64,000 bases of DNA from Malacoraja senta. Its lineage: Eukaryota. The stretch lies in NCBI GenBank assembly GCA_038087875.1, contig JAXLNO010001219.1:1-64000 (forward strand), in the 5' to 3' direction. Made by a program: the position numbers and the translations under genes. How positions within the stretch are numbered: position 1 is the first letter of the stretch; the number at the start of each line of letters is the position of its first letter. This document shows, in pieces, positions 14,994 through 47,379 of this stretch. The notes under the pieces are model-generated. The model was not told where the DNA came from and searched no databases. It saw only the letters and a list, made by a program, of their open reading frames with translations.

Positions 14994-15928
14994 ATGAGGG
15001 CCAGGGCAGTTTACTGTTCTGGATCTCAGATGTGGGAAGTCATGGAGTCTGATAGCCCTCCAGACGTCCACATCTGCGCCAGGTGTATCGAGATGGGCTC
15101 CTAATGGACCGTATTAGGAACCTGGATCAGCAGCTCGATGACCTCCATCTGGTCAGGGAGAGCGAGGAAGTCATTGAGAGGAGTTACAGGGATGTGGTCA
15201 CTCCAACACCACAGGAGGCAGGCAAGTGGATCACGGTTGGGAGAGGCAAGGGGCACAGGCAGGGACTAGAGAGTACCCCGGTGGCTGTACACCTTGACAA
15301 TAAGTACTCCTGTTTGAGCACTGTTGGGGTGGACAGCCTACCTGGGGTTAGCGACAGCGGCCGGGCCTCCGGTATAGAGACCGGCCCTGTTGCTCAGAAG
15401 GGAAAGGAAAAGAAGAGGAGGGCAATACTAATAGGGGACTCTATAGTTAGGTGGTCAGACAGGCGATTCTGTGGACGCAGTCGGGAGACCTGGATGGTAG
15501 TTTGCCTCCCTGGTGCCAGGGTCTGTGATGTGTCTCAACGTGTCCAAGATATCCTGAAAGGGCAGGGAGAGGAGCCCGAGGTCGTGGTACATAGAGGTAC
15601 CAATGACATAGGTAAAAAAAGAGAAGAGGTCCTGAAAGGAGAATTTAGGGAGTTAGGAGGGGACTTAAAGAGAAGGACAGAAAAGGTAACAATCTCGGGA
15701 TTACTGCCTGTGCCACGCGACAGTGAGAGTAGGAATGGAGCGAGGTGGAGGATAAATGCGTGGCTGAAGGACTGGTGCAGAGGGCAGGGATTCAAATTTG
15801 TGGATCATTGGGACCTCTTTTGAGGAAGGTGCGACCTGTACAAAAAGGATGGGTTGCACTTAAACCTGAGGGGGACCGATATCCTGGCGGGGAGATCTGC
15901 AAAGGCTACTGGGGAGACTTTAAACTAG
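14994..15928 (+). pseudogene. CR1 ORF1 (Cys-rich N-terminus plus SGNH esterase), disrupted
   Basis: MRARAVYC...CARC, then a frameshift near 15098 into ORF 15083-15823 with GDS and GTNDIG motifs. Premature TGA at 15821, followed by DGLHLN. Confidence 0.8.
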
Positions 15929-16015
15929 AATGGTTGGGGGGAGGGACTCAAATAGAGAATGCTATTAGACAGTGTGTGAGGCAGGAGGCAGAGAAGGAAA
16001 GCACTCAGACCCAAC

Positions 16016-19000: not shown

Positions 19001-19040
19001 GATCAGGGGGTATGGAGAGAAGGCAGGTACGGGATACTGA
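16016..19040 (+). pseudogene. CR1 ORF2 (AP endonuclease plus reverse transcriptase), one frameshift
   Basis: Motifs [36 protein letters not shown] 5-nt deletion near 17705 relative to the copy at 42-45 kb splits the ORF. Confidence 0.92.
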
Positions 19041-19479
19041 GTTGGATGATCAGCCATGATCATATTGAATGGCGGTGCAGGCTCGAAGGGCCGAATGGCC
19101 TACTCCTGCACCTATTTTCTATGTATCTATGTATCTATGAGCACTTGGACAGGTCCACGTATGGGGAAGGTTTGGGGAGTTTCGGGTTGAACGTGGGAAG
19201 ATCTGACTAACTTGGATGAGCACATTGGTCTAACGCGTTGGGGAGAAGGGCCTGTTTCCGTGACGTATGACTGTGATCATCTGACCCAACCATTTGTTAA
19301 ATATAACCCTGATCCTTTCACACTGTAACGTGTCGAGCTGCTGCTGGCTCGCTGTGGTTCACGATCTCAAGTCCTGTTCCCTTCTTCGTCGTTGCTATTT
19401 GAGAGATGCGGTTGTATCTGAGAGCTACGAGCTGAGCGACAGACTGACAAGTGCTGACCTCGTCACTGTGGATAAAACA

Positions 19480-19516
19480 ATGTGGATTCCCATTCTTCTC
19501 ATCTCCTCGCTGCCGG
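19480..19516 (+). CDS. Gene B leader exon ([12 protein letters not shown])
   Basis: aaacaATG, hydrophobic signal-peptide start, donor CCGG|gtgagt in phase 1. Identical coding copy at 58209. Confidence 0.85.
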
Positions 19517-22500
19517 GTGAGTCAAAGCCAGATCCTGATATTCCAATGATCAATGTTATTTGGGGTCCCATGCACCCTTTTCACAGCAGAGATAGTTAAG
19601 TATGTGTTGACATGTAATGGGGGAGATGCAACTCAGTGCATTGTGGTGATGGATCTGAAATCACATTTGAATATCTAGACTATGTTCGTAGTTTAACCAC
19701 TGTTGACACTTGGTCTAATTGCATCCTGATGATAGTTTACAAGCATAAAATAAAAAATGAATTTGGAGCAGATACTCCAAGATACCTGGACCGAAGGACA
19801 GAGGTTGCAGCATCACCAGGAAGTTAATTCTACACTTTTAAAATGTGTTTACAACTGAGGGGGGGATTCGGGATTGTGGACTCATTATGTCAGTTCAAAT
19901 ATTCCCTGCATTTCTCCAACTCAAATCTGTCGCAAACCCAACAATTCCCCGGAGTCTGAGACTGAACCACTGTCCTCGCTCTATCCATCTACCCCCAACT
20001 CTCTCTCTATCCACTTTCCAATCCGCAGCCCAGTCCTAGGGTCACCAAAGAGGTAGATAGTTCAGCACTGCTCTCTGGTTGTGGTAGGATGATTCCGATG
20101 TCTGATAACAGCTGGGAAGGAACTGTCCCCGAATCTGGCGGTGTGCCTGTTCACGTTAGTAACGCTCTCCGGTAATGGACCCGCTTTATTGTAACTCGTC
20201 CGTCCTCTGTGTCCTCAGTCAGGGCTTTGTAAAGGCAGTGGCGGCGGTGAATGTCTAAACACGGGTCCGGCTTTCCGCGTCCGGGTGGGACTAGAGGGGT
20301 ACCAGGCGCTGTCCGCGGGCACCTGGGGGATTTCCGGGACATCTGGGCACCGCCTGGGGTTGAATACATCCTTGACAAGTATTGTAACATAGTTGTATAG
20401 TAGTTTATTTCGTTTATTTGTTTGTCTTGTATTATGGCGGTGGGTTCTGTTTTGTTTTATTGTATTGTAAATATTATTTTTAATAATTGAATAAATTATT
20501 TGATAATTTAAAAAAAAACACGCGTCCGGCCCAGTGTCGATTGAGAGATGAATGTTGGTAGCGCAGCCGGCGGCACCGCCAATTACATAGCAAAGTGGGG
20601 TCTTTCTGTAGGGTGAGAGGCCGGGCACCGCCTGGGATTGTTGGAAGGCAGCTCCTGCAAAATTGCCGCGCTCCCTCAGAACCGCACTGCGCTCCCAGCC
20701 CAGTTTCTGCTCAGGGATCTGGGGTGCGAAGTGAACCCTAATTGTACTGACCCGGGGACAGAACACTGACACAACTGGTACAATAACAGCACTGCCTGCA
20801 CTTCAGACCGGAGACATTGGCCGAGAAGCAATACGACACATTATGGAACGTTTTACGTTTTCTTTCATGTAATCTTCAAAATGTATCTATTTCCATTAAA
20901 CGGTTAATTTGTTCTCGATCTGAAAGTTTCTCCGCTCAGTTTCAGATACAGTGTGGGCAAAGTGGGATGTAAGAGGAGCTGTGGGAACAGCGATCACAAT
21001 CGATTGTCACTATGCAGCAGAGTACCGCTCACACACAAAATACTGGTGCCGTGGGAGGAGTCGACCGTGCAGAGATTTAGTGGAAACTAATGGGCAACAC
21101 GGACGGAATGGAAGAGTGTCAATCTCAGATAACCCGGCACGAGGAATATTGACTGTGACTGTGGAGGATCTTCACTCTGAAGATACAGGATGGTACAGAT
21201 GTGGAATTACTACATCTGCCGACCATCCAATATTTAACGTTTTACTCGAAGTATCTGACGGTACGTTTCGCAGCGAATGACTTGACGTCTCCAGTAGAAA
21301 GACAATACAGGATTACAATCGATCCTCTTACAGTGCATAGATACATGAAAAGGAAATTACGTTTAGTGTAAGGCAAATCCAGCAAAGTCCGATTAAGGGT
21401 AGTCCGGGGTCATCAAAGACGTACATAGTTCCACACTACTCTCTGGATGTGGTAGGATGATTCAGATGCCTGACAACAGCTGTGAAGAAATTGTCCCCGA
21501 ATCTGGCGGTGTGCGTGTTCACGCTAGTAACGCTCTCCGGTAAGGGACCTGGAGGTGGGTGGTGAGTGGGCGAGTGGTGAGTGGGTGAGTGATTGGGTGA
21601 GTGGGCAGATGCGTGGCAGATGAAGTTTAATGTGGATAAATGTGAGGTTATCCACTTTAGCAGCAAAATCATGTAGGCAGATTATTATCTGAATGGTGTC
21701 AGTTTAGGAAAAGGGGAAGTACAAAGAGATCTGGGGGTCCTTGTTCATCACTCACTGAAAGTAAGCATGCAGGTACAGCAGGCAGTGAAGGACGCTAGTG
21801 GCATGTTGACCTTAATAACAAGCGGAGTTGTTTACAGGAGCAAAGAGGTCCTTCTGCATTTGTACATGGCACTAGTGAGACCACTCCTGGATTATTGTGT
21901 ACAGTTTTGATCTCCAAATTTGACGAAGGATCTTCTTGCTATTGAGGCAGTGCAGCGTAGGATCACAGGGTTAATTCCCGGGATGGCGGGACTGTCATAT
22001 GTTGATAGAATGGAGCGGCTGCGCTTGTATACTCTGGAATTTAGAAGGATAAGATGGGATCTTATTGAAACATATAAGATTATTAAGGGATTGGATACGC
22101 GAGAGGCAGGAAACATTTTCCCGATATTAAGAATAATGGATAGGCCATTTAAAACGGAGATTAGGAAAAACATTTTCACCCAGAGTGTTGTGAATCTGTG
22201 GAATTATCTGCCTCAGAAGGCAGTGGAGGCCGATTCACTGGATGCATTCAAAAGAGGGTTAGATAGAGCGCTTTGGGCTAGCGGAATCAAGGGGTATGGG
22301 GAAAGGCAGGAACGGGTTACTGATTCTGGATGATCAGCCATGAACACATTGAATGGCGGTGCTGGCTTGAAGGGCTGAATGGCCTACTCCTGCACCTATT
22401 GCCTATGTATATATGTATCTATTTATCTATGTATGTATCTACAGTTCCTTGTGTCTCCACCTCTCATATTGAAAAGCAAGACCAATCAAAAATTGAGCAA

Positions 22501-25500
22501 GAGAACACTATACCCGTTAGAGTAACTGGGCGCAGTGGTTTCCTGATGATTGTTATCGGGTGTTACATTTGTATTTGAAGTGAACCCTACTGATGTTAAC
22601 GAATCACGAATAGATTTAGGTTCTGTTGAGATAAGGAAATAAAAGACAATTAAAGATAGACAAAAAATGCTGGATTAACTCAGCGATTCAGGCAGCATCT
22701 CTGGAGAGAAGAAATAGGTAACGTTTCGGGTCTGAGCATGGGTCTCGACCCGAAACGTCAGAGCGAGAGAGTTAGATGGAGCTCTAAAAGATAGCGGCGC
22801 TATGGGAAATGGTGAGAAGGTATGAACGAGGTACTGGTTGTGGATGATCAGCCATGATCATAGTGAATGTCGGTGCTGGCTCGAAGGGCCGAATGGCCTA
22901 CTCCTACACCTATTGTCTCTTATTTCTTGACCCGCTTTATTGTAACCCGTCCGTCCTCTGTTCTCAGTCAGGGCTATGTAAAAGCAGTGGCGGCGGTGAA
23001 TGCCTAAACACGGGTCCGGCCCAGTGTCGGTTGAGAGATGAATGTTGGCAGCGTAGCCGGCGGCACCGCCAATGAAATAGCAAAGTGAGGTCTTTCTGCA
23101 GGGTGAGAGGCCGGGCACCGCCTGGGATTGTTGAAAGGCAGCTCCTGCAACACTGCCGCGCTCCCTCAGTACCGCACTGCGATCCCAGCCCAGTTTCTGC
23201 TCAGGGATCTGGAGTGGGAAGTGAACCCTAATTGTACTGACCCGGGGACAGAACACTGACACAACAGGTACAATAACAGCACTGCCTGCACTTCAGACCG
23301 GAGACATTGGCCGTGAAGCAATATGACACATCGTGGAACGATTTAAGTTTTCTTGCATGTTTTCTTCAAAATGTATCTATTTCCATTAAACAGTTCATTT
23401 TCTCTCCATCTGAAAGTTTCTCCCCTTCATTTCAGCTGCAGTGTGGGGAGAGACGTATGTAACAGGAGATGTGGGAAGAGCGATCACAATCGATTGTCAC
23501 TATGCAGCAGAGTACCGCTCACACCCAAAATACTGGTGCCGTGTGCAGAGTCGCCAATGTACAGATATGGTGGAAACAAATGGGCTACACGGACGGAGTG
23601 GAAGAGTGTCAATCACAGATAACCCGGCACGAGGAATATTTACTTTGACTGTGGAGGATCTTCACTCTGGAGATACAGGATGGTACAGGTGTGGAATTAC
23701 AGCATCTAACGGCCGTCCAATGTTAAACGTAGAACTCCAAGTATCTGACGGTACGTTTCGCAGCGATTGACTTGATGTCTCCACTGAAATGCCTGATCCA
23801 TGTTTTCTCTGGGAAGGGGCAGGGCAGCACCGATATCCCGAGACTCCGCAGCAGTGCAGAGACCTGCGGGGAGCGGGCAGGGGCCGGGAAACCGCACTCA
23901 TTTTGCTCTCACCCTGTGCGGGGTCTGCCCCATTGAGCGGCCACCCACTTAGAAACATAGAAACATAGAAAATAGGTGCAGGAGGAGGCCATTCGGCCCT
24001 TCGAGCCAGCACCGACATTCATTGCGATCATGGCTGATCGTCCCCAATCAATAACCTGTGCCTGCCTTCTCCCCATATCCCTTGATTCCACTAGACCCTG
24101 GAGCTCTATCTGACTCTGTTAAATCCATCCAGGGATTTGGCGTCCACTGTCCTCTGTGGCAGGGAATGCCACAAATTCACAACTCTCTGGGTGAAAACGT
24201 TTTTTCTCACCTCAGTCTTAAATGGCCTCCCCTTTATTCTAAGACTGTGGCCCCTGGTTCTGGACTCGCCCAACATTGGGAACATTTTTCCTGCATCTAG
24301 CTTGTCTAGTCCTTTTACAATTTTATGTGTTTCTATAAGATATCCCCTCATCCTTCTAAACTCCAGTGAATACAAGCCTAGTCTTTTCAATCTTTCCTCA
24401 TAAGACAGACCCGCCATCCCAGGGATCAATCTCGTGAACCTATGCTGCACTGCCTCAATCACAAGGATGTCCTTCCACAAATTAGGAGACCAAAAACTGT
24501 ACGCAATACTCCAGATGTGGTCTTTCCAGAGCCCTATACAACTGCAGAAGAACCTCTCTACTCCTATACTGAAATTCTCTTGTTATGAAGGCCAACATTC
24601 CATTAGCTTTCTTCACTGCCTGCTGTACCTGCAAGCCAACTTTCAATGACCGGTGTACAAGGACACCCAGGTCTCGCTGTTCCTCCCCCTTACCTAACCT
24701 AACCCGGTTGTGATAATAATCTGCCCCCTTGTTGTTGCCACCAAAGTGGATAACCTCACATTTATCTATATTATACTGCCACGCATCTGCCCACTCGGTC
24801 AACCTGTCCTGCAACCTCCTAACGTCCTCTTCACAGTTCACACTGCCATCCAGCTTTGTGTCATCCGCAAACTTGCTAGTGTTGCTCCTAATTCCCTCTT
24901 CCAAATCATTAATATATATGGTAAACAGTTGCGGCCCCAACACCACCCACGTCAACACCCTACCCCCAACACCAATCGCTCTAATTTTAGTCACCAGTCC
25001 CTCGGGCGGGTCCTTATCAAAGGCTTTCTGAAAGTCTAGTTACACTACATCCACTGGCTCCCCTACATCCATTTTACTTGTCACATCCTCAAAAAAATCC
25101 AGAAGATTAGTCAAACATGATTTTCATAAATCCATGCTGACTTGGACTAATCCTTTTACTGCTATCGAAATGCCCCATTATTACCTCTTTAATAATTGAC
25201 ACCAGCATCTTTCCCACCACCGAAGTCAGGCTAACTGGTCTATAATTCCCCGTTTTTTCTATCGCTCCTTTTTTGAAAAGTGGAATTTAACTTCTCATTC
25301 ACTTCACTTTTCACTTCAAGTGGAATGCTCAGCACATTTCCCTTCCTCTGAACTGTATGAAATGTCACCCTGTCAGAAGTTTGCATTTCGACTCAAACTA
25401 ATAATCCGACAGATCAGTGAGAAACAAGTGTTGCTCACGGTCTGAATACCACGAGAGTTTAAAAAAATCAGTCCCCAGAGCTCAATAGACTGCGATCAGT

Positions 25501-28500
25501 CCTCCCGGGGTAGGCCATCCCGCTTCCCGCCCTCACCTCGGGGATCAGCCATTCCCTCCCAAACCCCGCGCTCTCTCTCTCTCCCTCTGCCCCGTCAATG
25601 CGCCCCCATCTCCAGCAGCAACTGTCCACCCACCGCCCGGCAGTCAGCCAACCTCTCCACCCGGACATTTCCCCGGTGGTAAGCAGAATAAACTCATCTT
25701 TCACCCCATCAGCCGTCGCACACAACACATAATCCTCCAACATTTTCGCCACCTCCAACGCGATCCCACAACTAGCCACATCTTTCCATCTCCACCGCTT
25801 TCTGCTTTCCGAAGAGACCGTTCCTTCCGTAACTCCCTGGTCAACGTCCATCCTCCCCCCCCCAAAAAAAACCCATCCCCTCCCCAAGTACCTTCCCCGA
25901 CAACTGCAGGAGATAGATCACCTGTCTCGATACCTCCTTCCTCTGCTCCCTCCAAGGTCTCCAACAATCTTTCCGGGTGAGGATTCACTTGCATCTCCTC
26001 CTTGCTCACCTAGTACATCCGCTGTTCCAGATGTGAACTACTATATATCGGCGAGACCAAGCGCAGACTCGGCGATCGTTTCGCTGAATAACTCCGCTCA
26101 GTCTGCTTCGGCCTACGCTACTTCCCGATTGCTAAACACTTTAATTCCCCCTCCCATATCCAAACTCAACTTTCCGTCCTGGACCTCCTCCACTGTCCAA
26201 CGTAAATAGGAGGAAAATCACCTCATATTTCGCTTGGGCAGCTTACAACCCATCGGTTTGAATATTGACTTCTCTAACTTCAAGGAACCCTTACTTTACT
26301 CCTGTCCCCATCCCGCCACCATCCTAGCTCTCCAGTTAGTTGCACTGTCATCCTAATTTTCTTTTACTTATTGTATGCCTCGTTGTCACCTTCCCTTCAG
26401 CTCACAATGATCCATTGTCCATTTTATTTTCACCTTTGATCACTTGTTTTCACACATTACCTGTCCATTTATCTTCTGCCTCCCTGTCCCACGATTCTCA
26501 GGCTGAAGATTGGTCTCGACCGGAAACGTCACCCATTCCTTCTTTCGAGAGATGCTGCCTGCTCCGTTGCGTTACTCCAGCATTTTGTGTCTATCTTAAA
26601 GGGATCGTAATGGGGGAAATGGAACTCAGTGCATTGTGGTGCTGGATCTGAAATCACACTTGAATATCTACACAATGTTCGTAGTTTAACCACTGTTGAC
26701 ACATGGTCGAATTAAATCCTGACGATAAATGAAAGGCTTAAAATAGCGAATAAATTTGAAGCAGATACTGCAAGACACCTGGACCGAAGGCGAGAGGTTC
26801 CAACGTCATCTGGAAGTTAATTCTACACTCTCAAAATGTGTTTATCAAGGAGGTGGAAGTTAGGATTGTGGACTCATTGTGTCAGTTCAAACATTCCCTG
26901 CATTTGTCCGGCTCAACTCTGTCGCAAACCCAACAATTCCCCGGAGTCTCAGACTGAACCACTGTCCACGCTCTATCCACCCACCCCCAACTCTCTCTCC
27001 ATCCTCTCTCGGTTCCGTGGCCCAGTCGTGCTGAATTGTCCAGGGTGAGCCGGGGTCATTGGGAATAAAACCTGTCCCAGATGAGCAGCGGGACATTGGG
27101 CTCACAATTCAGTTTAGTTTATTGTCACGAGTACCGAGGTACAGTGAATCTGGCGGTGTGCGTTTTCACGCTAGTAGCGCTCTCCAGCAAGGGACCCGCT
27201 TTATTGTAACCGGTCCGTACTCTGTCCTCAGTCAGGGCGTTGTAAAGACAGTGGCTGCGGTGAATTTCTAAACACGGGTCCGGCCCAGTGTCGGTTGAGA
27301 GATGAATGCTGGCAGCGCCGACACTGAAATAGCAAAGTGGGGTATTTCTGTGGGTTGAGAGGCCGGGCACCGCCTGGGATTGTTGAAAGGCAGCTCCTGC
27401 AACGCTGCCGCGCTCCCTCAGTACCGCACTGCGATCCCAGCCCAGTTTCTGCGCAGGGATCTGGAGTGGGAAGTGAACCCTAATTGTACTGACCCGGGGA
27501 CAGAACACTGACACAACTTGTACAATAACAGCACTGCCTGCACTTCAGACCCGAGACATTGGCCGTGAAGCAAAATGACACATCATGGAACGATTATGTT
27601 TTTCATGTAATCTTCAAAATGTATATATTTCCATTAAACAGTTCATTTGCTCTCCATCTGAAAGTTTTTCCCCTCCCTTTCAGCTGCAGTGTGGGGAGAG
27701 AGGAATTTAACAGGAGTTGTGGGAAGAGCCATCACAATCGATTGTCACTATGCAGCAGAGTACCGCTCACAGGCTAAATACTGGTGCCGTGGGCAGAGTC
27801 GCCAGTGTACAGATATGGTGGAAACAAATGGGCAACACGGACGGAGTGGAAGGGTGTCAATCACCGACATACCGGCACTAAGAATATTTACTATGACTGT
27901 GGAAGATCTTCACTCTGGAGATACAGGATGGTACAGCTGTGGAATCACAGCACCTGCCGACCATTCAATATTTAACGTATATCTCCAAGTATCTGACGGT
28001 ACGTTTCGCAGCGATTGACTTAATGTCTCCACTGAGAAGCTGTTTTCTTCGGGAAGGGTCAGGGCAGCACCGATATCTCGAGGCTCCGCAGCAGTGCAGA
28101 GGCCTGCGGGGAGCGGGCGAGGGTCGGGAAACCCCACTCATGTTTGCTCTCACCCAGTTCGGGCTCTGTCCCATTGAGCGGCCACCCACTTCAAGACACT
28201 CAACACATTACCCTGCCTCTGAATTGTATGAAATATCACCCTGTCAGAGGTTTGCATTCCGACTCAAACTAATAATCCGACAGATCAGTGAGAAACAAGT
28301 GTTGCTCGCCGTCTGAATACCCGGAGAATCATAAACAGGGAATCAGTCCCCAGAGCTCCACCGACTGCGTTCAGTCCTCCCGGGGCAGGCCAGTCCGCTT
28401 CCCGCCCCCACCTCAGGAATCAGTCACCCCCTCCCCACCCCGCGCACTCTCTCTCTCTCCCTCTGTCCAGTAAATGCGCCCCCACTGCCAGCAGCCATTG

Positions 28501-31500
28501 TCCACCCACCGCCCGGCAGCCAGCCAGCCTCTCCTCCCGGACATTTCCCCGTTCGTAAGCAGAATAAACTCATCTTTCGCCCCATCAGCCGTCGCACACA
28601 GCATATATTCCTCCGACATTTGCGCCACCTACAACGGGATGCCACAACTAGTCACATCTTTCCATCTCCTTCGCTTTTTGCGTTCCCTCCGCAACTCCCT
28701 GGTCAACACGTCCTCTCCCCCCCCCCCTCCCCTCGTCCCCAGGTACCTTCCCCTACAACTGCAGGAGATGCAACACCAGTCACTATATATCCCCCCTTTA
28801 CTCCGTCCATGGGCCTCAACAGTCTTTTCGGGTGAGGCAGAGGGTGGCTTGCATCTCCTCTAACCTCATCTACTCTATCCGCTGTTCCAGGTGTGAACAA
28901 GCGGATATAGTAGATGGGAGACCAAGCGCAGACTCGGCGATCGTTTCGCTGAACAACTCCGCTCAGTCTGCCTCGGCCTACGCTACATCCCGATTGCTAA
29001 ACACTTTTATTCCCCCTCCCATTCCCAAACTGATCTTTCCGTCCTGGACCTCCTCCAGTGTCAGAGTGAGGCCAAAGGCAAATTGGAAAAACAGCGCCTC
29101 ATATTTCGCTTGGGCAGCTTACAACCCAGCGCTTTGAATATTGACATCTCTAACTTCAAGTAACCCTTGCTTTACTCCTTTCCATCCCGCCCCCATCCGA
29201 AACCTCCAATTAGATTCACCTGATAATATTTTACTGATTGTACGCCTCGTTGTCACCTTCCCTTCAGCTGACAATGATTCAATCTACATTTCCCTTTAAC
29301 ATTGTCACCTTTGATCACTTGTTTTAACATCTTATCCTTCCATTTCTCTTCTGTCACCCAGAACATGACTGTCAGGCTGGAGAAGGGTCTCGATCCGAAA
29401 CTTCACCCACTCCTTCTCTCGAGAGATGCTGCCGGCTCCGCTGAGTTCCCCCAGCATTTTGTGTCTCTCTTAAAGCGATCGTAATTAGTTTTCGCGATTA
29501 AATTACAAGGCATTGAATTGTGTTTTTGGCACGCTGGTCTTCATCAGTGAGAACATTCAGAATATAATTTGTGATAATATGCTTCAGACGTGCAGATGTT
29601 CAGTCCACACTTTGGGAATTGTGTTCAGCTTCAGTCACTCAGCTCCAAGAAAAGTTGAGATGGACAGCGTGCAGAAAGGTTTTAGGGCGACGTTGCCTGG
29701 ACAGGATGGGATTGACGCAGGGAGCGATTGGACAAACTCAGACTTCATTCCTTGGTGTGGAAATGATTGAGAGAGGAACTTATAGAAATGAATCAATCAC
29801 GAGAAGCATGTTCATTTTCCCACGATGTGTGGAATCAAAAAGTGGAGGACAGAGGTAATGGGAACTATTTAAAGAGGGAGGAATAGTAAGGTGCCATTGA
29901 CCGTAATGGCATGTTTTGTACAGATGAGTGGCCGAAGCTGAACACAATTCGCACAAGTTCGACCTCAATAACATATGTACAACTGAAACATAACATCCCA
30001 ACATATGTTCTGAGGGACAACATTTTCCACACATTGGGTAATATGTACATGGAACCTGCTGCCAGGGAAAGTTGTTGAGGCAGAATAGCAGCATTTAAAA
30101 TAAATTTTGGATATTTGCGTAGATTGGGATCATTGCGAGTGATAAATGAGAAACGCGGACATATGGAAATGTCATAGAAAGACATGTTGGTCGGCATTAA
30201 TGAGCTGTTGTGATGGGCATCTTTCGGTTCTCAATAACTCTAACCTTCTTCGGTTTCTGCGCTTCGCACACTCCCAGAGATGTAGATGAGCCGGTGAGGT
30301 ATCAACCGGACGGTTCGGGCTGAGATAAAGTGCTGCTGAGATTTAGCAAGTGTTTGGTTTTTAACAATTCATACAGGTGACTGAATATTTGGTCCATTCC
30401 CACAGAACCCATGTCTGCTCCTGTGCTCAGTTATCTGTCAGCAGCAAATGCCTCACGTCTTGGAGGCTCAGTGTCAGTGTCCTGTGAGTCTCTCCGTGGA
30501 TCCCTTCCCATCCATTACACATGGTTTGAGAAGAACGAGCATTGGGTTTCAACGATCTTGCAAGGCAATCAACTGGATCTGAGTTGTGAAATCCTCAGAG
30601 GTGATCACCTTCGATATTACTGCACAGCCGCAAATAATCGTGCGACAAAATCCAGTGAAATAGTCAAGGTGAAAGTCTTCAAAGGAGCAGGAACGTGCAG
30701 TTATGTGACAGAAATGAACAATGCAGGTGAGTGTTCCTCTCGTGTCCCTGAACCTGCTGCTATTCACCTTGTGGTGATGTTCATGTATTTCTTGTTATTT
30801 GCAGACGGCATCATTGCAGCCACCGTGAGCTCATGGTGTAAAATGCGAGAGTTTGTTTGGGGGACTGGCAAATAATTGCCCGTAGCTTCCACCATGGAGG
30901 TGTTGAGCAATTTCAGCAAAGGAGAGAAAGACATGCACTTGTCATAAAGCGTTGAGTGCACTCCATCAAATTTCTGCCTTCTGCCTTAAAAATGCCGCTT
31001 GGCTGCCGCTTAAGGTCTCACAGTCACTTTGAGACATTGAAAGCAACCAAATGCATTCTGTTTGGATCCGCCATCATTTACAATCAAGGATGTACAATTT
31101 CATGATCATGTTCATGATTTTAACTGTTAATTTGTGTTAAACTCCAGTAATATCACTAAATTAAATTGTAATCTACTTGGCCGTCACTCCATCAAGTATA
31201 ACCCTTACTTTTGTCAAAGAGAATTTTGAAATGAACTCCCAGTAGGTGTGGAGACGTTCAGATTGGAAGTCCAGAATAGAGTGTGAATGGTTTACATCAG
31301 AGACACCAAGCTTATACAATGCCAGCGTTTCTTAAACTATTTCAGTGCCATTCACCCTTGAGTCTTTATTACAAGATTTAATTCACCCTCCACTAAATAT
31401 TCTTATGTTTTTTTGGTTATTATCATCTTATTTTCACTTGTGCATAATTTTATATATAATTTATTTTGTCACATGAGCAAAAAACATGAATTAACTCATT

Positions 31501-37500: not shown

Positions 37501-40500
37501 GTCTGCATACCAGGGTCCTCAGGGAGGTGGCTCTAGAAATAGTGGACGCATTGGTGATCATTTTCGAATGTTCAATAGATTCAGGATCAGTTCCTGTGGA
37601 TTGGATGATAGCTAATGTTATCCCACTTTTCAAGAAAGGAGCGAGCGGGAAAACGGGGAATTACCGACCAGTTAGCCTGACTTTGGTGGTGGGAAAGATG
37701 TTGGAGTCAATCATTAAAGAGGTAATAATGGGGCATTTGGATAGCAGTAAAATGATTAGTCCAAGTCAGCATGGATTTATGAAAGGAAAATCACGCTTGA
37801 CTAATCTTCTGGAATGGTTTGAGGATGTGACAAGTAAAATGGATGAAGGGCAGCCAGTGGATGTAGTGTCACTCGACTTTCAGAAAGCCTTTGATAGGTC
37901 TCGCATGGGAGACTGGTGACTAAAATTAGAGCACATGGTACTGGTAGGGTGTTGACGTGGATAGAAAATTGATTGGCAGACACGAATCAAAGCGTAGGAG
38001 TGAACGGGTCCTTTTCAGAATGGCATGCAGTGGCGAATGGAGTGCCGCAAGGCTCGGTGTTGGGGCCGCAACTGTTTACCATATATATTAATGATTTGGA
38101 AGAGGGAATTAGGAGCAACGCTAGCAAGTTTGCGGATGACACAAAGCTGGGTGGCAGTGTGAACTGTGAAGAGGATGTTAGGAGGTTGCAGGGTGACCTG
38201 GACAGGTTGAGTGTGTGGGCAGATGCGTGGCAGATGCAGTATAATATAGATAAATGTGAGGTTATCCACTTTGGTGGCAAAAAAAAGGGGGCAGATTATT
38301 ATCTCAATGGGGTTAGGTTAGGTAAGGGGGAGGAACAGCGAGACCTGTGTGTCCTTGTACACCGGTTACTGAAAGTTGGCGTCCAGGTACAGCAGGCAGT
38401 GAAGAAAGCTAACAAGAGGATTTCAGTACAGGAGTAGAGTGGTTCTTCTGCAGTTGTATAGGGCTCTGTTAAGACCACATCTGGAGTATTGTGTACAGTT
38501 TTGGTCTCCTAATTTGCGAAAGGACATCCTTGTGATTGAGGCAGTCCAGCGTAGGTTCACGAGATTGATCCCTGGGATGGCGGGACTGTCTTATGAGGAA
38601 AGATTGAAAAGACTAGGCTTGTATTCACTGGAGTTTAGAAGGATGAGGGGGTATCTTATAGAAACATATAACATGCTTTTTATTTTTTAAAGACTGGACA
38701 AGCTAGATGCAGGTAAAATGTTCCCAATGTTGGGCGAGTCCAGAACCAGGGGCCACAGTCTTAGAATAAAGCGGAGGCCATTTAAGACTGAGGTGAGAAA
38801 AAACGTTTTCACCCAGTGAGTTGTGAATTTGTGGAATTTCCTGCACAGAGGACAGTGGAGGCCAAATCACTGGATGGATTTAAGAGAGAGTTAGATAGAG
38901 CTCTAGGGGCTAGTGGAACCAAGGGATATGGGGAGAAGGCAGGCATGGGTTATTGAGTGGGGGCGTTCAGCCATGATCACAATGAATGGCGGTGCAATGA
39001 TAGGGCCGAATGGCCTCCTCCTGCACCTATTTTCTATGTTTCTATGTTTCCATGTTTCCATGTTTCTATAGGGCGTTCCCTGCGGTATTCACCATGACTT
39101 CTCCATCACTAACCTCACCCCATGGTGTGAGATGAGTATAGTTGCCAAACACAACTACTGCTGCTTTGCCTTGCAGTGACCTGCTCTAGTGTGGTACTGA
39201 TAGGAAAATGCATAGTGAATTATGGGCTAAATCACCAACTTGCGGAGTTGGTCAAATTCTCAATGTCAGGCATTCCAACAGCAGGAAGTGTCTCCACCTA
39301 GAACGTGACCCTGTGTGGTAGGCACGTTAAGTCACACTGCTGACCTTGAGATGGTCATGGTGAGCTGCCTTCTGAAGATGTTCCATATTGCAGACAGCTC
39401 TAAACGAACAGTCAATGTCCAAACCAATGTTGGTGGATGTGGAGATGGAGTTGTGAATGGCATTGGGGTGAGATTTGTGGAATGAAGTGCATTGTTTTCT
39501 CTTTGGCATGGTGTTCTCTCCACCGAGGTTGGAACAGGGTTGTAGAACCGCGCTCACAACGTGGTGGTTTCAAGGATAGCTGCAAATATTTGGGTAAATC
39601 CCTCAGATACCACACCACTGCAGTACTGAGGGAGGGCAGCGTGCTAGCTGTAAGATATGAAAACTCCAATAACAGTGGCATGGTGGGACAGCGATATAGT
39701 TGCTGCCTTATTGCCCCAGAGACTTATGTTCGATCCTGACTCCTGTTGCTGTCTGTTCGGAGTTTGTTCCTTCTCTCAGAGACCACGTGGGTGTTCTCCA
39801 GGTGTTCCAGTTTTCTCCCACATTCCAAAGACGTGCAGGTTTGTAGGTTAATTGGCTTCTGTAAATTGTCTCTAGTGTGTAGGGTAGATCTAATATATGG
39901 TGATTACTGGTCGACGCAGATTTGGTGGGCCGAAAGTCCTGTTTACATGCTGTATCTCTAAAATAAATTAAATTAACAACAATACAATTTATTTGTCTTT
40001 TTTGTCTTTTGGACAAATTTTTCATTTGGACCCCGTTGAGGTCCAAACGAAATGTCGTTTCTGCAGCCATACATTACAAAACGAAGAAGACCCGAGACAC
40101 AACACAATTTACACATACATCCATCACAGCGCTGTGATGGAAGGCAAAAAAACGTATCTCTCCACTGCACTCCCCCCCCCCCCCCCCGCCCACCATGTCA
40201 GAGTCAAAGTCAAAGCCCCCGGCGGGCGATTATCCCGCGGCCATTAAAGCCACGCCGCTTAATGCAAGGTCGCGCACCGGGTCTTGGTGTTAGAGCCCCG
40301 GCGCGCGCTCGCAAAGTCCGGCGGCCATTCCAAGCCGTGCGGGGCGACGATGTAAAGCCCCGCTCCAGGTGCTCTTCAACCCCGCAACTCGGGCGGGAGA
40401 AGTCGCCGCTGCGGAAGCCCCGAAAAGCGGTCTCCCACCAGGGGACCCGCGGGCTTCCGGTGTTGCCGTCCGCCAGACCCGCGGTTGTAGCCTCCGAATC

Positions 40501-43500
40501 TCCGGGGGTCTGGAAGCAGCAGCGATTGTCTCCACCACAGCTCCACCCGCTCCGGACTCGGCTAGCCCCGCGACGGTGAGTAGTCCGCAGCTCCGCAACT
40601 GGAGCCCCAGGTCGTTCCTGCTGGAGGCCGCTCCACGTTGCCCAGCCCCAACGACAACGGAGACCCGACAAAGAAAAGGTCGGGTCTCCCGTGCAGGGGA
40701 AAGATTTTAAAGTCCCCCCCCCACCCCCACCGCCACCCTCCCACACACATACCCCGACAAAAAAAAAAAAAAAAAACTACATAAAAACGAGACAAAAATA
40801 ATAAAGAGACAGACGGACTGCAGAGGCCGCTGCAAACGAGTCGCGCCGCCCACCGTTGGATGATAAACTAAACTAAACTAAACCAAACTCAGCTGAACTA
40901 AACTAAAGTAATCATTGCTATTAATGTGTAACAGTTCCCATGCATTGTTTGTGAAGGAGGAGGGAGGGTTCCTTAATGTTTGGGCGCAATTGCTCTTGAA
41001 CCAGTTTCATGATCGTTGGTCAATGTCACCTTACTGTGAGCAGATTAGCTGCTGCGTTACTCACCGAAACAGACTCTACACCTCATCTCCTTTGCTGCAT
41101 ACTTCAAAAAAATCATGAAAGGTGCCATATAAATTGTTGACTTTTGTTCTTTACTGAAGGCCAAGAATCAATGATGAGCCATATCTCACCCTTCCCTATT
41201 CTCTGTCCGACAGGATCACTTACATAGTTGCGTCTGGTGTCGCTGTGCTTCTCCTGATTCTCATCATTGCCTTCTTTTGGTACCAAAAGCGTAAAACCAA
41301 GGGTGAGTTTCTGATTTCCATTAAATAATTTCACAATACTTGTCTCAGTTCCCTCCAGAATGTCAAGAGATTTAATTCTGATCTAATCAACAAATGCCCT
41401 GCATTAAAGTAATACAGTGTTGGAGGAAGCATGGATGATCAATAATGCTATCACGTTTGATGCTATAATGGTGACTCGGTGACAAAAACTATTCTTTTAA
41501 CATCATTGTACTTAAACTGTCTGAGTGTGAAATGGCAGAGATGCGTGAGAACTAAGAGGCTAGGTAGAAGTAAGATTTACATCGATACTCTCATCCTCTC
41601 AGCTGTTAGAATATGCTTCGTGTGATTAGCTGTTGTATTTCAAATCAGATTAAGTCGTGTTTATTGTCACATGCACAAGCATGATGAAGCACTGTTACAA
41701 TGAAGATCACACCTGCAGCCTTACAGGGACATAAACAACGTACAACATACCTGCCTCACACAGAGGGCGGTGGGTATATGACAGGAGCTGCCAGAGGAGG
41801 TAGTTGAGGCAGGGCAGGTCTAGCCTGGACAGGTAATCCAAGATGTGAACACCCATGAACTTGAAGCTGCCAACTATCTTCACTGCCGATGAAAATGTGA
41901 AAGTTCACTGAGCTGTTCCTCAGTCAGAGAGCATTAGTGGAAAGTAAAACAGTAAACATTTCACATCCAAGACCCATTACAACAGGGAAAGAGGGAAAAG
42001 AGGGGGGAACCTCATTGAAAGATCAAATAGTGAAAGGCCTAGATACAGTAGATGTAGAATGGATGTAGAAGGGACTCAAATAGAGAATGCTATTAGACAG
42101 TGTGTGAGGCAGGAGGCAGAGAAGGAAAGCACTCAGACCCAACATGTAGGGGGGAAAGAAGAAAATAATAATAAAAAGAGAATAAGAGGTGGTGGGGTTC
42201 TTAAATGTGTGAGCAGAGAAACAGAGGGGTGTCAAATGCGGGCGGAAGCAATAGGTAGCAAGGTGAAAAGTAAAAGTGGCAGGCAGACAAATCCAGGGCA
42301 AAAATCAAAAAGAGCCACTTTTCAACATAATTGTATAAGGGGTAAGAGCGTTGTAAAAACAAGCCTGAAGACTTTGTGTCTCAATGCAAGGAGCATTCGT
42401 AATAAGGTGGATGAGTTGAACATGCAGATAGCAATTAATGATTATGATAGTTGGGATAACGGAGACATGACTCCAGGGTGACCAAGGCTGGGAGCTGAAC
42501 ATCCAGGGATATTCAATATTCAGGAGGGATAGAGAGAAAGGAAAAGGAGGTGGGGTAGTGTTGCTGGTTAGAGAGGAGATTAACGCAGTGGAAAGGAAGG
42601 ACATTAGCTTGGAGGATGTGGAATCGGTATGGGTAGAGCTGCGAAACACTAAGGGGCAGAAAACGCTGGTGGGTGTTGTGTACAGGCCACCTAGCAGTAG
42701 TAGTGAAGTTGGGGATGGCATCAAACAGGAAATTAGAAATGCGTGCAACAAAGGCAAAACAGTTATAATGGGGGACTTCAATCTACATATAGATTGGGTG
42801 AATCAAATTGGCAGGGGTGCTGAGGAAGAGGATTTCTTGGAATGTATGAGGGATAGTTATCTAAACCAACATGTAGAGGAACCAACGAGAGAGCAGGCTA
42901 TTCTAGACTGGGTATTGAGTAATGAGGAAGGGTTAGTTAGCAGACTTGTTGTGCGTGCCCCCTTGGGCAAGAGTGACCATAATATGGTTGAGTTCTTCAT
43001 TAGGATGGAGAGTGACATTGTTAATTCAGAAACAACGGTTCTGAACTTAAAGAAAGGTAACTTTGAGGGTATGAGACGTGAATTGGCCAAGATTGACTGG
43101 CAATTAGTTCTAAAAGGGTTGACGGTGGATATGCAATGGAAGGCATTTAAAGACCGCATGGATGAACTACAAAAATTGTTCATCCCAGTTTGGCAAAAGA
43201 ATAAATCAGGGAAGGTAGTGCATCCGTGGATATCAAGGGAAATCAGGGATAGTATCAAAGCAAAAGATGATGCGTACAAATTAGCCAGAAAAAGCAGCAT
43301 ACCAGAGGACTGGGAGAAATTCAGAGACCAGCAGAGGAGGACAAAGGGCTTAATTAGGAAAGGGAAAATAGATTATGAAAGGAAACTGGCAGGGAACATA
43401 AAAACTGACTGCAAAAGTTTTTATAGATATGTGAAGAGAAAGAGATTAGTTAAAACAAATGTAGGTCCCTTGCAGTCAGAAACAGGTGAATTGATGATGG

Positions 43501-46500
43501 GGAACAAGGATATGGCGGACCAATTGAATAACTACTTTGGTTCCGTCTTCACTAAGGAAGACATAAATAATCTGCCGGAAATAGCAGGGGGCCGCGGGTC
43601 AAAGGAGATGGAGGAACTGAGTGAAATCCAGGTTAGTCGGGAAGTGGTGTTGGGTAAATTGAATGGACTAAAGGCCGATAAATCACCAGGGCCAGATAGG
43701 CTGCATCCCAGAGTACTTAAGGAAGTATCTCCAGAAATAGTGGATGCATTAGTGCTAATTTTTCAAAACTCTTTAGATTCTGGAGTAGTTCCTGAGGATT
43801 GGAGGGTAGCAAACGTAACCCCACTTTTTAAGAAGGGAGGGAGAGAGAAAACGGTGAATTACAGACCAGTTAGTCTAACATCGGTAGTGGGGAAACTGCT
43901 AGAGTCAGTTATTAAAGATGGGATAGCAGCACATTTGGAAAGTGGTGAAATCATTGGACAAAGTCAGCATGGATTTACGAAAGGTAAATCGTGTCTGACG
44001 AATCTTATAGAATTTTTCGAGGATGTAACTAGTAGAGTGGATAGGGGAGAACCAGTGGATGTGTTGTATCTGGACTTTCAGAAGGCTTTCGACAAGGTAC
44101 CACATAAGAGATTAGGATACAAACTTAAATCTCACGGTATTGGGGGTTCAGTATTGATGTGGATAGAGAACTGGCTGGCAAACAGGAAGCAAAGAGTAGG
44201 AGTAAACGGGTCCTTTTCACAATGGCAAGCAGTGACTAGTGGGGTACCGCAAGACTCAGTGCTGGGACCCCAGCTATTTACAATTTATATTAATGATCTG
44301 GACGAGGGAATTGAAAGCAACATCTCCAAGTTTGCGGATGACACTAAGCTGGGGGGCAGTGTTAGCTGTGAGGAGGATGCCAGGAGACTGCAAGGTGACT
44401 TGGATAGGCTGGGTGAGTGGGCAAATGTTTGGCAGATGCAGTATAATGTGGATAAATGTGAGGTTATCCACTTTGGTGGCAAAAACGGGAAGGCAGACTA
44501 TTATCTAAATGGTGGCCGATTAGGAAATGGGGAGATGCAGCGAGACCTGGGTGTCATGGTACACCAGTCATTGAAAGTAGTCATGCAGGTGCAGCAGGCA
44601 GTGAAGAAAGCGAATGGTATGTTGGCCTTCATAGCAAGAGGATTTGAGTATAGGAGCAGGGAGGTTCTACTGCAGTTGTACAGGGTCTTGGTGAGACCAC
44701 ACCTGGAGTATTGCGTACAGTTTTGGTCTCCAAATCTGAGGAAGGACATTATAGCCATAGAGGGAGTGCAGAGAAGGTTCACCAGACTGATTCCTGGGAT
44801 GTCAGGACTTTCATATGAAGAAAGACTGGATAGACTTGGCTTATACTCGCTAGAATTTAGGAGATTGAGAGGGGATCTTATAGAAACGTACAAAATTCTT
44901 ATGGGGTTGGCCAGGCTAGATGCAGGAAGATTGTTCCCGATGTTGGGGAAGCCCAGGACAAGGGGTCACAGCTCAAGGATAAGGGGGAAATCCTTTAAGA
45001 CCGAGATGAGGAAAAACGTTTTCACACAGAGAGTGGTGAATCTCTGGAACTCTCTGCCACAGAGGGTAGTTGAGGCCAGTTCATTGGCTATATTTAAGAG
45101 GGAGTTAGATGTGGCCCTTGTGGCTAAGGGGATCAGGGGGTATGGAGAGAAGGCAGGTACGGGATACTGAGTTGGATGATCAGCCATGATCATATTGAAT
45201 GGCGGTGCAGGCTCGAAGGGCCGAATGGCCTACTCCTGCACCTATTTTCTATGTTTCTATGTTTCTATTAGTGGGATAGTCTAGGACCAGAGATCATAAC
45301 TTCAGAATTAAAGGACATTCCTTTATGATGGACATGAGGAATAATTTAGTTCGTCAGAGGGTGATGAATCTGTGGAATTCTTTGCCACATAAGGCTGTGG
45401 AGCCCGTCAATAGATATTTTAAGGCATAGATAGATTCTTGATTCGTACAGGTGCCCTGGATTATGGAGGGAAGGCAGGAGAAAGAGGTTAGGAGGGAGAG
45501 ATAGATCAGCCATGGTTAAATGGCGGAGTAGATGGATGGGCTGCATAGCTTAATTCTACTCTTATCACTCATGAACTTATGAAAACCTTTTTAAGCAGAT
45601 TAGGTTAGGGTGATGGACACAAAATGCTGGAGTAACTGAGCGAAACAAGCAGCATCTCTGGAGAGAAGTAATGTGTGATGTTTTAGGTCGAAACTCTTTT
45701 TCAGACTGATGTCAGGCGAGTGGCAGTACTGACATAAAGTATAGTCGGACACAGTAAGACTGGTCAGAGAACTTCGAAGGGGGAGTGGATGGAGGGAGGG
45801 AAAGCAAGGGCTACTTGAAGTTAGAGAAGTCAATGTTCATACCGCTGGGGTGTAACCAGCCCAAGGAAATATGAGGTGCTGTTTCTCCAATTTGTGCTGG
45901 GCCTCACTCTGAGAATGGATGAGGCCCAGGACAGAATGGTTAGTGTGGGAATGGGAGTAGGAGTTAAAGTGTTGATCAACCGGGAGATCAGGTAGGTTTA
46001 GGCAGCTTCAGTGTGAGATGGGGTAGAGTACGGGGAATATGATCCATTCTGAACATTACGTACAGTAACCAAAACAACAGGGCAGATTCTTACTCCATAC
46101 GTGCAAATATACTGCAGTGCCTTTGGGGTTCTCCTAAATATAAGGTCGTGGCAACAACACGTAGATGTTTGTGTGTTGGAAGGAACTGCAGATGGTGGTT
46201 TACACTGAAGGTAAACATAAAATGCTCTAGAAATTAGCGGGTCAGGGGCGACATTTTGCCAGCAGCGCAACAGAAAATCATCAAATATAGTAGTTCTCAG
46301 CTTAGCTGGATAAAAGAAACAGATTGAGTATGTGTGTATGTGTATATATACACACTGAACTTATTTTTCTCTCCCGTTATGTACTATGTCTACATATTCT
46401 GTTGTGCTGCAGCAAGTAAGATTGTCATTGTTCTATCTGGGACATATGACAATAAAACACTCTATACTCTTGAAAAGGAACAGTTGACGTTTCAAGGCGA

Positions 46501-47379
46501 GACCCTTCTTCAGACTGAGAGTCAGGTGAAAGGGAAACAAGAGATATAGAAGGTACATGGAACAAATGAATGAAATATATGAATGAATGATGTTTAAACC
46601 TGTTCATAATATGGCTCTATCGACAACATATTTTCCAGAATTCAAGTGCAATACATCACACGGTGAAGACAACAATGAAATCCAGGTAAAAATGTGAAAT
46701 ATAAATTCTCTGAGTGATGAAAAATATATAATATTGAATTATCTGTGTTTACACAGGCCATTTAGCAACACCAGTCCACTCCAGTTAAGAGAACCAGCAC
46801 AGAAACTGGCCCTTTGGCCCACCGAGTCCACGCCGACCGGTGACCCACGCACACAAAAACTATCCTACGCACACTAGGGACAATTTGCAATTATGCCAAA
46901 CCAATTAACCTACAAACATGTTGTAGGCACTGTCAGGCAACAACTCTACCGCTGCTCCACCATGCTGCGCTATCTTTGTGTTGTAAACAGCAGCAATGGC
47001 CTGTTCTGTACACTGAACAGTTTGAGACCTACTTTGTAATAGACATCTGTTGAGGACCTTTCAAATCTATTAGGTTGTAAAATTGGATTTTGTTATATTT
47101 TAGGAAATGGCAGTGTTGGAAGGGAACCACGTTGATGCAAATCTGCAGCAAATTGGAAACAACAGGGCAGCTGACCATTTGGATAACAATGAAGGTGGAA
47201 TCACGTATGCAGTGGTGAAATGTCAAAGGAAGTCGAGATCAAGGCACCCTGAGACTCACAACACTGTTCTCTACGCAGATGTTAATTTTCATCGCAACTG
47301 CCCAAAGGGCAATCGGAAACCCCACTCTACTAGGGCTCCAGAGAACTCTGAAACAATTTATGCCTCTGTTGTTTCTTAG
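19480..47379 (+). CDS. Gene B: complete 11-exon inhibitory CD300/pIgR-like (MDIR-like) receptor, L-V-V-V-C2-V-C2-stalk-TM-ITIM/ITIM/ITSM, 798 aa
   Basis: Exons of 37+315+315+315+321+312+321+49+89+47+276 = 2397 nt join in frame with canonical AG/GT sites and consistent phases, with no internal stop. Confidence 0.85.
20946..21260 (+). CDS. Gene B exon V1 (CD300/pIgR-like V domain)
   Basis: Acceptor tttcag|AT, donor GACG|gtacgt, 315 nt, phase 1-1. Motifs IDCHY, KYWC-x6-C, DTGWYRCG. Confidence 0.93.
21585..22440 (+). mobile_element. CR1 LINE 3' fragment
   Basis: Decayed RT C-terminus (ORF 21920-22333) plus 3'UTR. Paralogous insertion at 60465-61320. Confidence 0.8.
23436..23750 (+). CDS. Gene B exon V2
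   Basis: Acceptor atttcag|CT, donor GACG|gtacgt, 315 nt, phase 1-1, same V motifs. Confidence 0.93.
23950..25285 (-). mobile_element. CR1 LINE 3' fragment
   Basis: Minus-strand ORFs 24106-24480 and 24482-24994 (FADD motif) and a (ctatgttt)n tail at 23950. Paralogous insertion at 62836-64000. Confidence 0.85.
25480..26600 (+). mobile_element. Penelope-like fragment
   Basis: [15 protein letters not shown] at about 26043 and ctgaagattggtctcgaccggaaacgtc at 26503. Paralog of 28350-29467. Confidence 0.75.
27684..27998 (+). CDS. Gene B exon V3
   Basis: Acceptor ccctttcag|CT, donor GACG|gtacgt, 315 nt, phase 1-1. Confidence 0.93.
28350..29467 (+). mobile_element. Penelope-like fragment
   Basis: Same sequence as 1-836 at offset 28631, extended further 5'. 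Confidence 0.78.
30406..30726 (+). CDS. Gene B exon C2a
   Basis: Same splice sites as 1775-2095. One amino-acid difference (GEHLR versus GDHLR). Confidence 0.9.
31975..32286 (+). CDS. Gene B exon V4
   Basis: Same splice sites and identical translation to 3344-3655. Confidence 0.93.
33484..33804 (+). CDS. Gene B exon C2b
   Basis: Acceptor ttacccacag|AA, donor ACTG|gtaagt, 321 nt, phase 1-1. About 10 amino-acid differences from the gene A C2b. Confidence 0.9.
34636..34906 (-). mobile_element. tRNA-derived SINE
   Basis: Occupies the position equivalent to the SINE at 5932-6260. Confidence 0.65.
35101..35149 (+). CDS. Gene B stalk exon ([16 protein letters not shown])
   Basis: Acceptor ttccaacag|GA, donor AAG|gtaaac, 49 nt, phase 1-2. 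Confidence 0.82.
35395..36420. mobile_element. Penelope-like element with inverted RT and endonuclease parts
   Basis: Minus-strand GIY-YIG/pLTR part at about 35395-36190. Plus-strand RT piece ([29 protein letters not shown]) at 36244-36420. Confidence 0.7.
37150..39065 (+). mobile_element. CR1 LINE, 5'-truncated and frameshifted
   Basis: ORFs 37263-37919, 37973-38437 (FADD) and 38439-38690, with a (ctatgttt)n tail at about 39030-39069. An older CR1 3' piece lies at about 36600-37010. Confidence 0.88.
39675..39975 (+). mobile_element. tRNA-derived SINE whose tail is interrupted by a 0.9-kb insert
   Basis: SINE body ends at ctgtatctctaaa. An (AAACT)n tail reappears at about 40865. Confidence 0.65.
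39976..40860. other. Unclassified GC/CpG-rich 0.9-kb insertion
   Basis: Sharp GC-rich core at about 40190-40740 with an A-run at 40758-40776, absent from the gene A intron. Confidence 0.5.
41214..41302 (+). CDS. Gene B transmembrane exon ([30 protein letters not shown]), uncharged
   Basis: Acceptor gtccgacag|G in phase 2, donor AAGG|gtgagt in phase 1. Hydrophobic core followed by a basic stop-transfer stretch, KRKTK. Confidence 0.88.
42071..45268 (+). mobile_element. Young 5'-truncated CR1 LINE with an 870-aa open ORF2 segment, nested in an older CR1 3' fragment
   Basis: Highly similar to 15943-19138. 2-nt deletion near 42450, ORF 42558-45170. Older CR1 sequence flanks it at 42000-42070 and 45268-45590. 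Confidence 0.92.
45617..45990 (-). mobile_element. Penelope-like 3' fragment
   Basis: Reverse complement of [19 protein letters not shown] plus the pLTR tail. Confidence 0.65.
46639..46685 (+). CDS. Gene B cytoplasmic exon 1 ([16 protein letters not shown])
   Basis: Acceptor attttccag|AA, donor CAG|gtaaaa, 47 nt, phase 1-0. It exactly bridges the TM exon and the terminal exon. Confidence 0.75.
47104..47379 (+). CDS. Gene B terminal exon with ITIM (ITYAVV), ITIM (VLYADV) and ITSM (TIYASV)
   Basis: Acceptor atattttag|GAA in phase 0. Motifs at 47200, 47266 and 47353; stop TAG at 47377-47379. Confidence 0.88.
   Translation, partial: EMAVLEGNHVDANLQQIGNNRAADHLDNNEGGITYAVVKCQRKSRSRHPETHNTVLYADVNFHRNCPKGNRKPHSTRAPENSETIYASVVS

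Follow-up and report, generated by a model that had tools for sequence, protein, structure and literature searches.

An inhibitory-type receptor gene of the MDIR family with an additional V exon in the skate Malacoraja senta

The polymeric immunoglobulin receptor (pIgR) has five V-type immunoglobulin (Ig) domains in mammals and two to four in other vertebrates, and the CD300 receptors come in paired activating and inhibitory forms, the latter with tails that contain immunoreceptor tyrosine-based inhibitory motifs (ITIMs). The modular domain immune-type receptor (MDIR) proteins, described in skates in 2006, reportedly contain from one to six Ig domains, MDIR2 and MDIR3 carrying ITIMs and MDIR1 having a charged transmembrane (TM) segment. 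In PMC3031540, the skate MDIRs are presented as multigene families of activating and inhibitory receptors resembling CD300, TREM, FCAR, and pIgR, and the mixing of Ig subfamilies within one chain is given as the defining MDIR design (Cannon et al. 2006, Immunogenetics 58:362, as cited in PMC3031540). The gene analyzed here lies at positions 19480 to 47379, on the + strand, of a 64,000-nucleotide (nt) stretch of DNA from the skate Malacoraja senta (GenBank assembly GCA_038087875.1, contig JAXLNO010001219.1, positions 1 to 64,000), referred to below as the window; coordinates given without a locus name are those of the window. It is very probably an intact MDIR3-type gene of the MDIR family that encodes a type I membrane glycoprotein.

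The original prediction, in which a chain of eleven exons at 19480-47379 was read as a complete inhibitory receptor with six Ig domains, is confirmed as a real, intact gene of an inhibitory immune receptor, and its mapping was good. An independent rebuild reproduced exactly the 11 exons, all on the + strand, and the spliced coding sequence (CDS) of 2397 nt, i.e., 798 amino acids (aa) plus the stop codon, with no internal stops. All 20 splice sites are canonical, every acceptor being AG and every donor GT, and the phases are compatible throughout, as had been claimed; the six Ig exons are all of phase 1-1, and the last four exons are of phases 1-2, 2-1, 1-0, and 0. The window contains no runs of N. 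A further claim, that the gene is invisible in the program-made list of open reading frames (ORFs), did not hold, as the six Ig exons and the tail exon are all listed there as ORFs of 90 to 155 aa.

The spliced gene reads leader, V, V, V, C2, V, C2, stalk, TM segment, short cytoplasmic exon, and tail. The 37-nt leader exon (19480-19516), with the start codon and the signal peptide, ends in phase 1 at the donor G/GTGAGT (slashes mark splice boundaries). It is followed by three V-set exons of 315 nt each: V1 (20946-21260; pIgR-D1/CD300-like, with four Cys residues; Pfam V-set E value of 9.6e-13), V2 (23436-23750), and V3 (27684-27998), whose ORF is intact and which is the extra domain relative to MDIR3. 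Next come C2a (30406-30726, 321 nt), a FCRL5-like C2/I-type Ig domain recognized by the Pfam Ig_C17orf99, Ig_3, and Ig_2 models; V4 (31975-32286, 312 nt; Pfam V-set E value of 1.9e-13), which is the V-set domain between the two C2 domains; and C2b (33484-33804, 321 nt; Pfam Ig_3 E value of 6.8e-8), again of the FCRL5-like C2/I type. The stalk exon (35101-35149, 49 nt, phase 1 to 2) matches the MDIR3 segment GLEYSCVTSKRSKYSS. The TM exon (41214-41302, 89 nt, phase 2 to 1), recognized in a hydropathy scan, encodes an uncharged segment followed by a KRKTK stop-transfer sequence. The short cytoplasmic exon (46639-46685, 47 nt, phase 1 to 0) matches the MDIR3 segment GSNCNTSHGEENNEIQ, and the tail exon (47104-47379, 276 nt including the stop codon) carries the ITIMs ITYAVV and VLYADV and the immunoreceptor tyrosine-based switch motif (ITSM) TIYASV. 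The TM and tail exons are present in a single copy in the window, and the leader peptide is found there at 19480 and 58209 only. The interpretation of this region as a single inhibitory receptor gene was borne out, with four pIgR/CD300-like V exons, two FCRL5-like C2 exons, the uncharged TM segment, two ITIMs, and the ITSM.

The assignment to the MDIR family comes from the comparison of the whole protein with MDIR3 of the clearnose skate Rostroraja eglanteria (UniRef "Modular domain immune-type receptor 3," P0166). The two proteins are collinear from the leader to the C terminus, with 556 identical residues out of the 695 aligned (80%), and the sole large gap, of 101 residues, corresponds to one V domain; the V-V-C2-V-C2 layout of MDIR3 was obtained by scanning its database entry for domains. 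When V1 was used in an exhaustive search, it retrieved multi-domain elasmobranch proteins, including P0003, the best full-length match, which was used as the second query. This query retrieved MDIR3 and MDIR5 of the clearnose skate by name. Dozens of further matches were NCBI models that bear the name "polymeric immunoglobulin receptor-like" or "Fc receptor-like protein 5" and come from skates, rays, sawfish, sharks, and a chimaera. Neither of the two full-length searches found a near-identical annotated protein or one marked as belonging to the window itself; the closest annotated exon matches were at 92.5%.

The mixing of Ig subfamilies is seen in the window protein as well, as its V domains match pIgR, CD300, and TREM2 and its C2 domains match FCRL5. 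Each Ig domain of the gene is encoded by a single exon, and the homologues display many domain orders. Chains with mixed V and C2 domains are frequent among the 225 homologues that were fetched for a domain census, with VCVC found in 30, VCVCVC in 15, and VVCVC in 6 of them, and they are commonplace in the annotations of skates, rays, and sharks. The view that the alternation of CD300-like V domains with Fc receptor-like C2 domains makes for an unusual architecture must therefore be dropped: this alternation is the defining MDIR design and is found in a described protein that is 80% identical to this one. Judged by these features, the gene is a further member of a family known since 2006 and widely annotated, though not under its own name, and the receptor design itself is not new. 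What is new is confined to the extra V exon, which a second genus also retains, and to the map at exon level.

As for the kinds of domains, the prediction of CD300-like V and Fc receptor-like C2 domains agrees with comparisons to Pfam models and to solved structures. In Pfam, the V exons are recognized as V-set (E values of about 1e-13) and the C2 exons as Ig_3, Ig_2, or Ig_C17orf99. Among the PDB entries, V1 matches pIgR with an E value of 5e-49, the best stretch being D1, including the HT.KYWCR segment and the second cysteine pair; it also matches V domains of the CD300 family (E values of about 1e-19) and, more weakly, TREM2, NKp44, TIM, and FCMR. C2b and C2a match FCRL5 (PDB entry 9loc) with E values of 5.4e-40 and 4.9e-33, respectively. 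In the tree of V domains, V4 forms a separate clade (100/100 support), and V2 clusters with V2 of the thorny skate and V2 of the downstream gene (99/93 support). V1, V2, and V3 each belong to an old lineage of their own that also has a member in the thorny skate; the row of three V domains is not a fresh internal duplication.

The TM segment contains no charged residues and the tail combines two ITIMs with a C-terminal ITSM, features that mark the protein as an inhibitory-type receptor. An alignment of tails shows all three tyrosine motifs (Y742, Y764, and Y793 in the 798-aa numbering) to be conserved not just among skates but also in rays, sawfish, and sharks. At the position where skates read HVDANL, an additional tyrosine motif is present in rays and sharks. 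In the most likely reading, the ectodomain is an array of single-exon phase-1 Ig modules, namely, three pIgR-D1/CD300-like V domains, an FCRL5-like C2 domain, a V domain of a separate lineage, and another C2 domain. It is followed by a Cys-containing stalk, the TM segment, and a tail, about 110 aa long, that carries the two ITIMs and the ITSM. Judging from motifs only, ligand binding by the ectodomain could lead to phosphorylation of the tail tyrosines by Src-family kinases, and we infer, by analogy with ITIM receptors in general, that the phosphorylated tyrosines would recruit SH2 phosphatases of the SHP-1, SHP-2, or SHIP type, which would damp activating signals in leukocytes. Binding of Ig or lipids by the V domains would be in keeping with what pIgR D1 and the FCMR, CD300, TREM2, and TIM domains bind, and is at this point speculation.

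The two smallest exons, the stalk at 35101-35149 and the cytoplasmic exon at 46639-46685, were located by enumerating open AG...GT intervals of the right phase, and they rank first by score among the candidate pairs whose lengths add up to the missing 96 nt. Both match MDIR3 and other skate homologues at the corresponding segments. The annotated gene of the little skate has stalk (49 nt), cytoplasmic (47 nt), and terminal exons of identical size in the same splice contexts, and the stalk donor AAG/gtaaac is common to both species. An alternative candidate exon at 39134-39215, with a stalk-like EYSCQT followed by a hydrophobic run, was rejected because it has a stop codon immediately 5' and no usable acceptor, and because its frame is broken in the upstream copy. 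This candidate belongs to an intronic block of 167 nt (39070-39236) that is 84% identical to 7320-7486 in the upstream paralogue, where the EYSCQT homologue is at 7384; the block is possibly what is left of an older stalk/TM exon.

In the thorny skate, Amblyraja radiata, the orthologous locus (L002) is collinear with the window gene: all 11 exons recur there in unchanged order, and both exons and introns show 89 to 91% nt identity. Its NCBI protein model P0164 ("polymeric immunoglobulin receptor-like") is 84% identical to the window protein over the aligned part, and the V1 exon shows 88% aa identity to its orthologue. A V3-type exon is intact there (L002, 13091-13402; 82.7% aa identity, no indel, the same acceptor context and donor). 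The N-terminal extension of P0164 is spurious, as it is read from the C2b exon and the 5' flank of the upstream gene. In the little skate, model P0153 (locus L001) joins exons that flank a second leader exon, apparently across two tandem genes. Both these public models, P0164 and P0153, look chimeric.

The precise length of the protein depends on the choice of acceptors. At V1 and V4, a second in-frame AG is found 6 nt upstream of the modeled one (CAG/TTTCAG/), which would place the exon starts at 20940 and 31969. MDIR3 and the Leucoraja and Amblyraja models have VSG before each V domain, and in the little- and thorny-skate loci, the VS dipeptide is encoded via the AG 6 nt upstream. Since the related skate proteins carry this extra dipeptide, the V1 and V4 acceptors are probably the upstream ones, so that the mature CDS is more likely to have 2409 nt and encode 802 aa, with the 798-aa model as an alternative. 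V2 and V3 of the window gene do not have the VS dipeptide because the upstream AG has been destroyed (to CAT in V2 and to CCC in V3). A second thorny-skate model, P0167, requires a non-AG acceptor to keep this dipeptide.

Given that all the Ig exons are symmetric in phase, any of them could be skipped without breaking the frame, which makes the six-domain chain the maximal product of this gene. We lean toward the six-domain mRNA as a major product and consider a five-domain isoform like MDIR3 plausible. A tentative but serious alternative is that the main mRNA encodes five Ig domains (V-V-C2-V-C2), with one of the N-terminal V domains, most likely V3, usually skipped and the six-domain form minor or never made. 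Several observations weigh on this side and against the six-domain form. MDIR3 scans as having five Ig domains, not six, and the order V-V-V-C2-V-C2 is annotated in none of the 225 fetched homologues. P0164, the model of the collinear thorny-skate orthologue, omits the intact V3-type exon and joins V2 to C2a; however, P0164 is a poor model, because its N terminus comes from the C2b exon and the 5' flank of the upstream gene, and P0167 includes the V3-type exon. V2 and V3 do not have the upstream CAG acceptor implied for V exons by the related skate proteins, but the TTTCAG of V3 is preceded by a long polypyrimidine tract, and the V3 donor is identical to those of V1 and V2. In two genera, the V3 ORF is undisrupted and free of indels, and its ratio of nonsynonymous to synonymous substitution rates (dN/dS) relative to the thorny-skate orthologue is 0.51, the lowest of the V exons (11 synonymous versus 20 nonsynonymous changes, one-sided p = 0.07). 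As to transcripts, two sequencing runs, found with 27850-33820 as the query and mapped onto 27650-33640, covered the introns continuously, with zero exon-exon joints, and thus behaved as genomic DNA; a search of RNA-Seq libraries with the tail exon and its 3' flank listed no run; and the search of transcript-derived protein fragments (57 to 182 aa) with the V3 exon alone as the query found none that span a V3 junction.

It is also conceivable, albeit quite unlikely, that this gene copy is silent or in decay and looks intact owing to recent duplication and the slow evolution of skate genomes. The exons are barely more conserved than the introns relative to the thorny skate (about 90% identity for both), and the dN/dS values per Ig exon range from 0.4 to 1.7 against this orthologue, being near or above 1 for V2, C2a, and V4. 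Because of these values and the similar conservation of exons and introns, selection cannot prove the use of each exon; among the paralogues, dN/dS ranges from 0.43 to 1.24, and both sets of values have too little power for a test of exon use. The upstream ATG used by related skates, four codons earlier (MDKTM), is GTG in the window gene; a young 3.2-kb long interspersed nuclear element (LINE) sits in sense orientation in intron 9 (42067-45258); and a decayed orphan V4-like exon is found nearby, at 54249-54542. Against silence, there are 798 codons with neither a stop nor a frameshift, the 20 canonical splice sites, the retention of all structural Cys and Trp residues and of the three tail tyrosine motifs, and an intact orthologue in another genus; moreover, high dN/dS values are usual for ectodomains of immune receptors. 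The remaining alternative, two genes comprising a leader-V1-V2-V3 unit and a C2a-V4-C2b-stalk-TM-tail unit, might seem to agree with the 2.4-kb intron between V3 and C2a and with the duplication of the C2a-V4-C2b block as a unit upstream (1777-5164), but it is very unlikely indeed, given that no leader exon lies between V3 and C2a, that the TM and tail exons each occur just once in the window, that V3 finishes at a normal phase-1 donor, past which a read-through stops after 6 codons with no TM segment, that the thorny-skate orthologue has the same order and the little-skate gene the same exon sizes, and that MDIR3 and many annotated skate proteins run from a V domain straight into C2-V-C2-stalk-TM-tail.

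The intact single gene has close relatives on both sides. An upstream paralogue aligns, at positions 1-5966, with 28632-34661 of the window (6 kb at 94.75% identity), followed by weaker pieces that end near 7486. The C2a exon is 99.7% identical in nt to its upstream copy (1777-2094), and the V4 exon is 100% identical (3346-3654). The TM exon of the paralogue (8832-8924) contains an Arg residue (SYIAWNVGRWLFFLLLV), is 90% identical to the TM segment of MDIR5 (P0186), and is followed by a short tail. By its sequence, this paralogue looks like an activating partner with a homogenized ectodomain, and the two genes together present the combination of inhibitory and activating forms known from the MDIR multigene families. 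The gene analyzed here sits in a tandem cluster beside activating-type paralogues and thus resembles the inhibitory partner in a system of paired receptors.

Downstream, the next family member begins with a leader at 58209-58244 (identical peptide) and V exons at 59822-60133 and 62324-62635, of the V1 and V2 types, which show 86 to 91% protein identity to those of the window gene; it runs past the window end. The orphan V4-like exon at 54249-54542 has the proximal acceptor TTTCAT, Arg in place of one of the second-disulphide cysteines, and no 3' end or donor, and no C2 or TM exon was found near it. The LINE in intron 9 contains an intact ORF of 870 aa (42558-45170, + strand) with endonuclease and reverse transcriptase domains; another copy of this element, at 15926-19141, shares 97.6% identity with it. 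Intron 9 of the thorny-skate orthologue does not have this 3.2-kb insertion.

The value of this locus is in the exon-level map of an MDIR3-type inhibitory gene beside its activating paralogues, which covers splice phases, tandem acceptors, the dated insertion of a LINE, and an orthologue in collinear arrangement. Such a map helps to correct public annotations, which place genes of this kind under "pIgR-like" or "FCRL5-like" and include at least one chimeric model. The locus also shows how the number of domains in MDIRs changes as symmetric V exons are gained or skipped. To our knowledge, no pIgR has been identified in the cartilaginous fish lineage. One could imagine that the six-domain chain is real and has been conserved at least since the split from Amblyraja, that its pIgR-D1-like V domains bind polymeric IgM or IgW, and that MDIR3-type proteins are inhibitory Fc-like receptors and the nearest living relatives of the pIgR ancestor; we regard this chain of suppositions as a long shot.

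Among the known systems, MDIR3 is the closest in organization. The two proteins share their leader, the order of V domains followed by C2-V-C2, the Cys-containing stalk, the uncharged TM segment with KRKTK, and the short cytoplasmic segment. The likeness extends to the stalk (GLEYSC.TSKR..YSS), the short cytoplasmic exon (.CNTSHGE.NNEIQ), and the tail motifs ITYAVV, V(V/L)YADV, and (S/T)IYASVVS, and the TM segment and the tail of MDIR3 are 87% and 79% identical, respectively, to those of the window gene. In contrast to the window gene with its three N-terminal V domains, MDIR3 has two, and it consists of 701 aa rather than 802 (or 798). Its two N-terminal V domains are near-copies of each other, whereas V1, V2, and V3 of the window gene belong to three distinct old lineages, and V2 and V3 differ from the MDIR3 domains in not having the VS dipeptide.

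Similarity to the other families is limited to particular domains. The V domains are homologous to those of mammalian pIgR (best of all to D1, with its H-T-x-KYWCR stretch and the second disulphide pair). However, mammalian pIgR consists of five consecutive V-type domains without any C2 domain and has a transcytosis tail without ITIMs, whereas the window gene has FCRL5-like C2 domains, two in number, alternating with its V domains and a tail with ITIMs and an ITSM; the NCBI label "pIgR-like" reflects V-domain similarity only. The CD300 (CMRF35-like) receptors likewise have homologous V domains, but each of them has a single V domain on a stalk, as opposed to six Ig exons here, and the likeness is seen in the V domains only. 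Finally, human FCRL5 (PDB 9loc) and other FCRL proteins match the C2 domains and are, similarly, multi-Ig type I receptors with tyrosine-based motifs in their tails. They are built of Fc receptor-type C2/I domains, with no V domains of the pIgR/CD300 type and no detectable similarity beyond the C2 domains, whereas four of the six Ig domains of the window gene are V-set domains of precisely that type.

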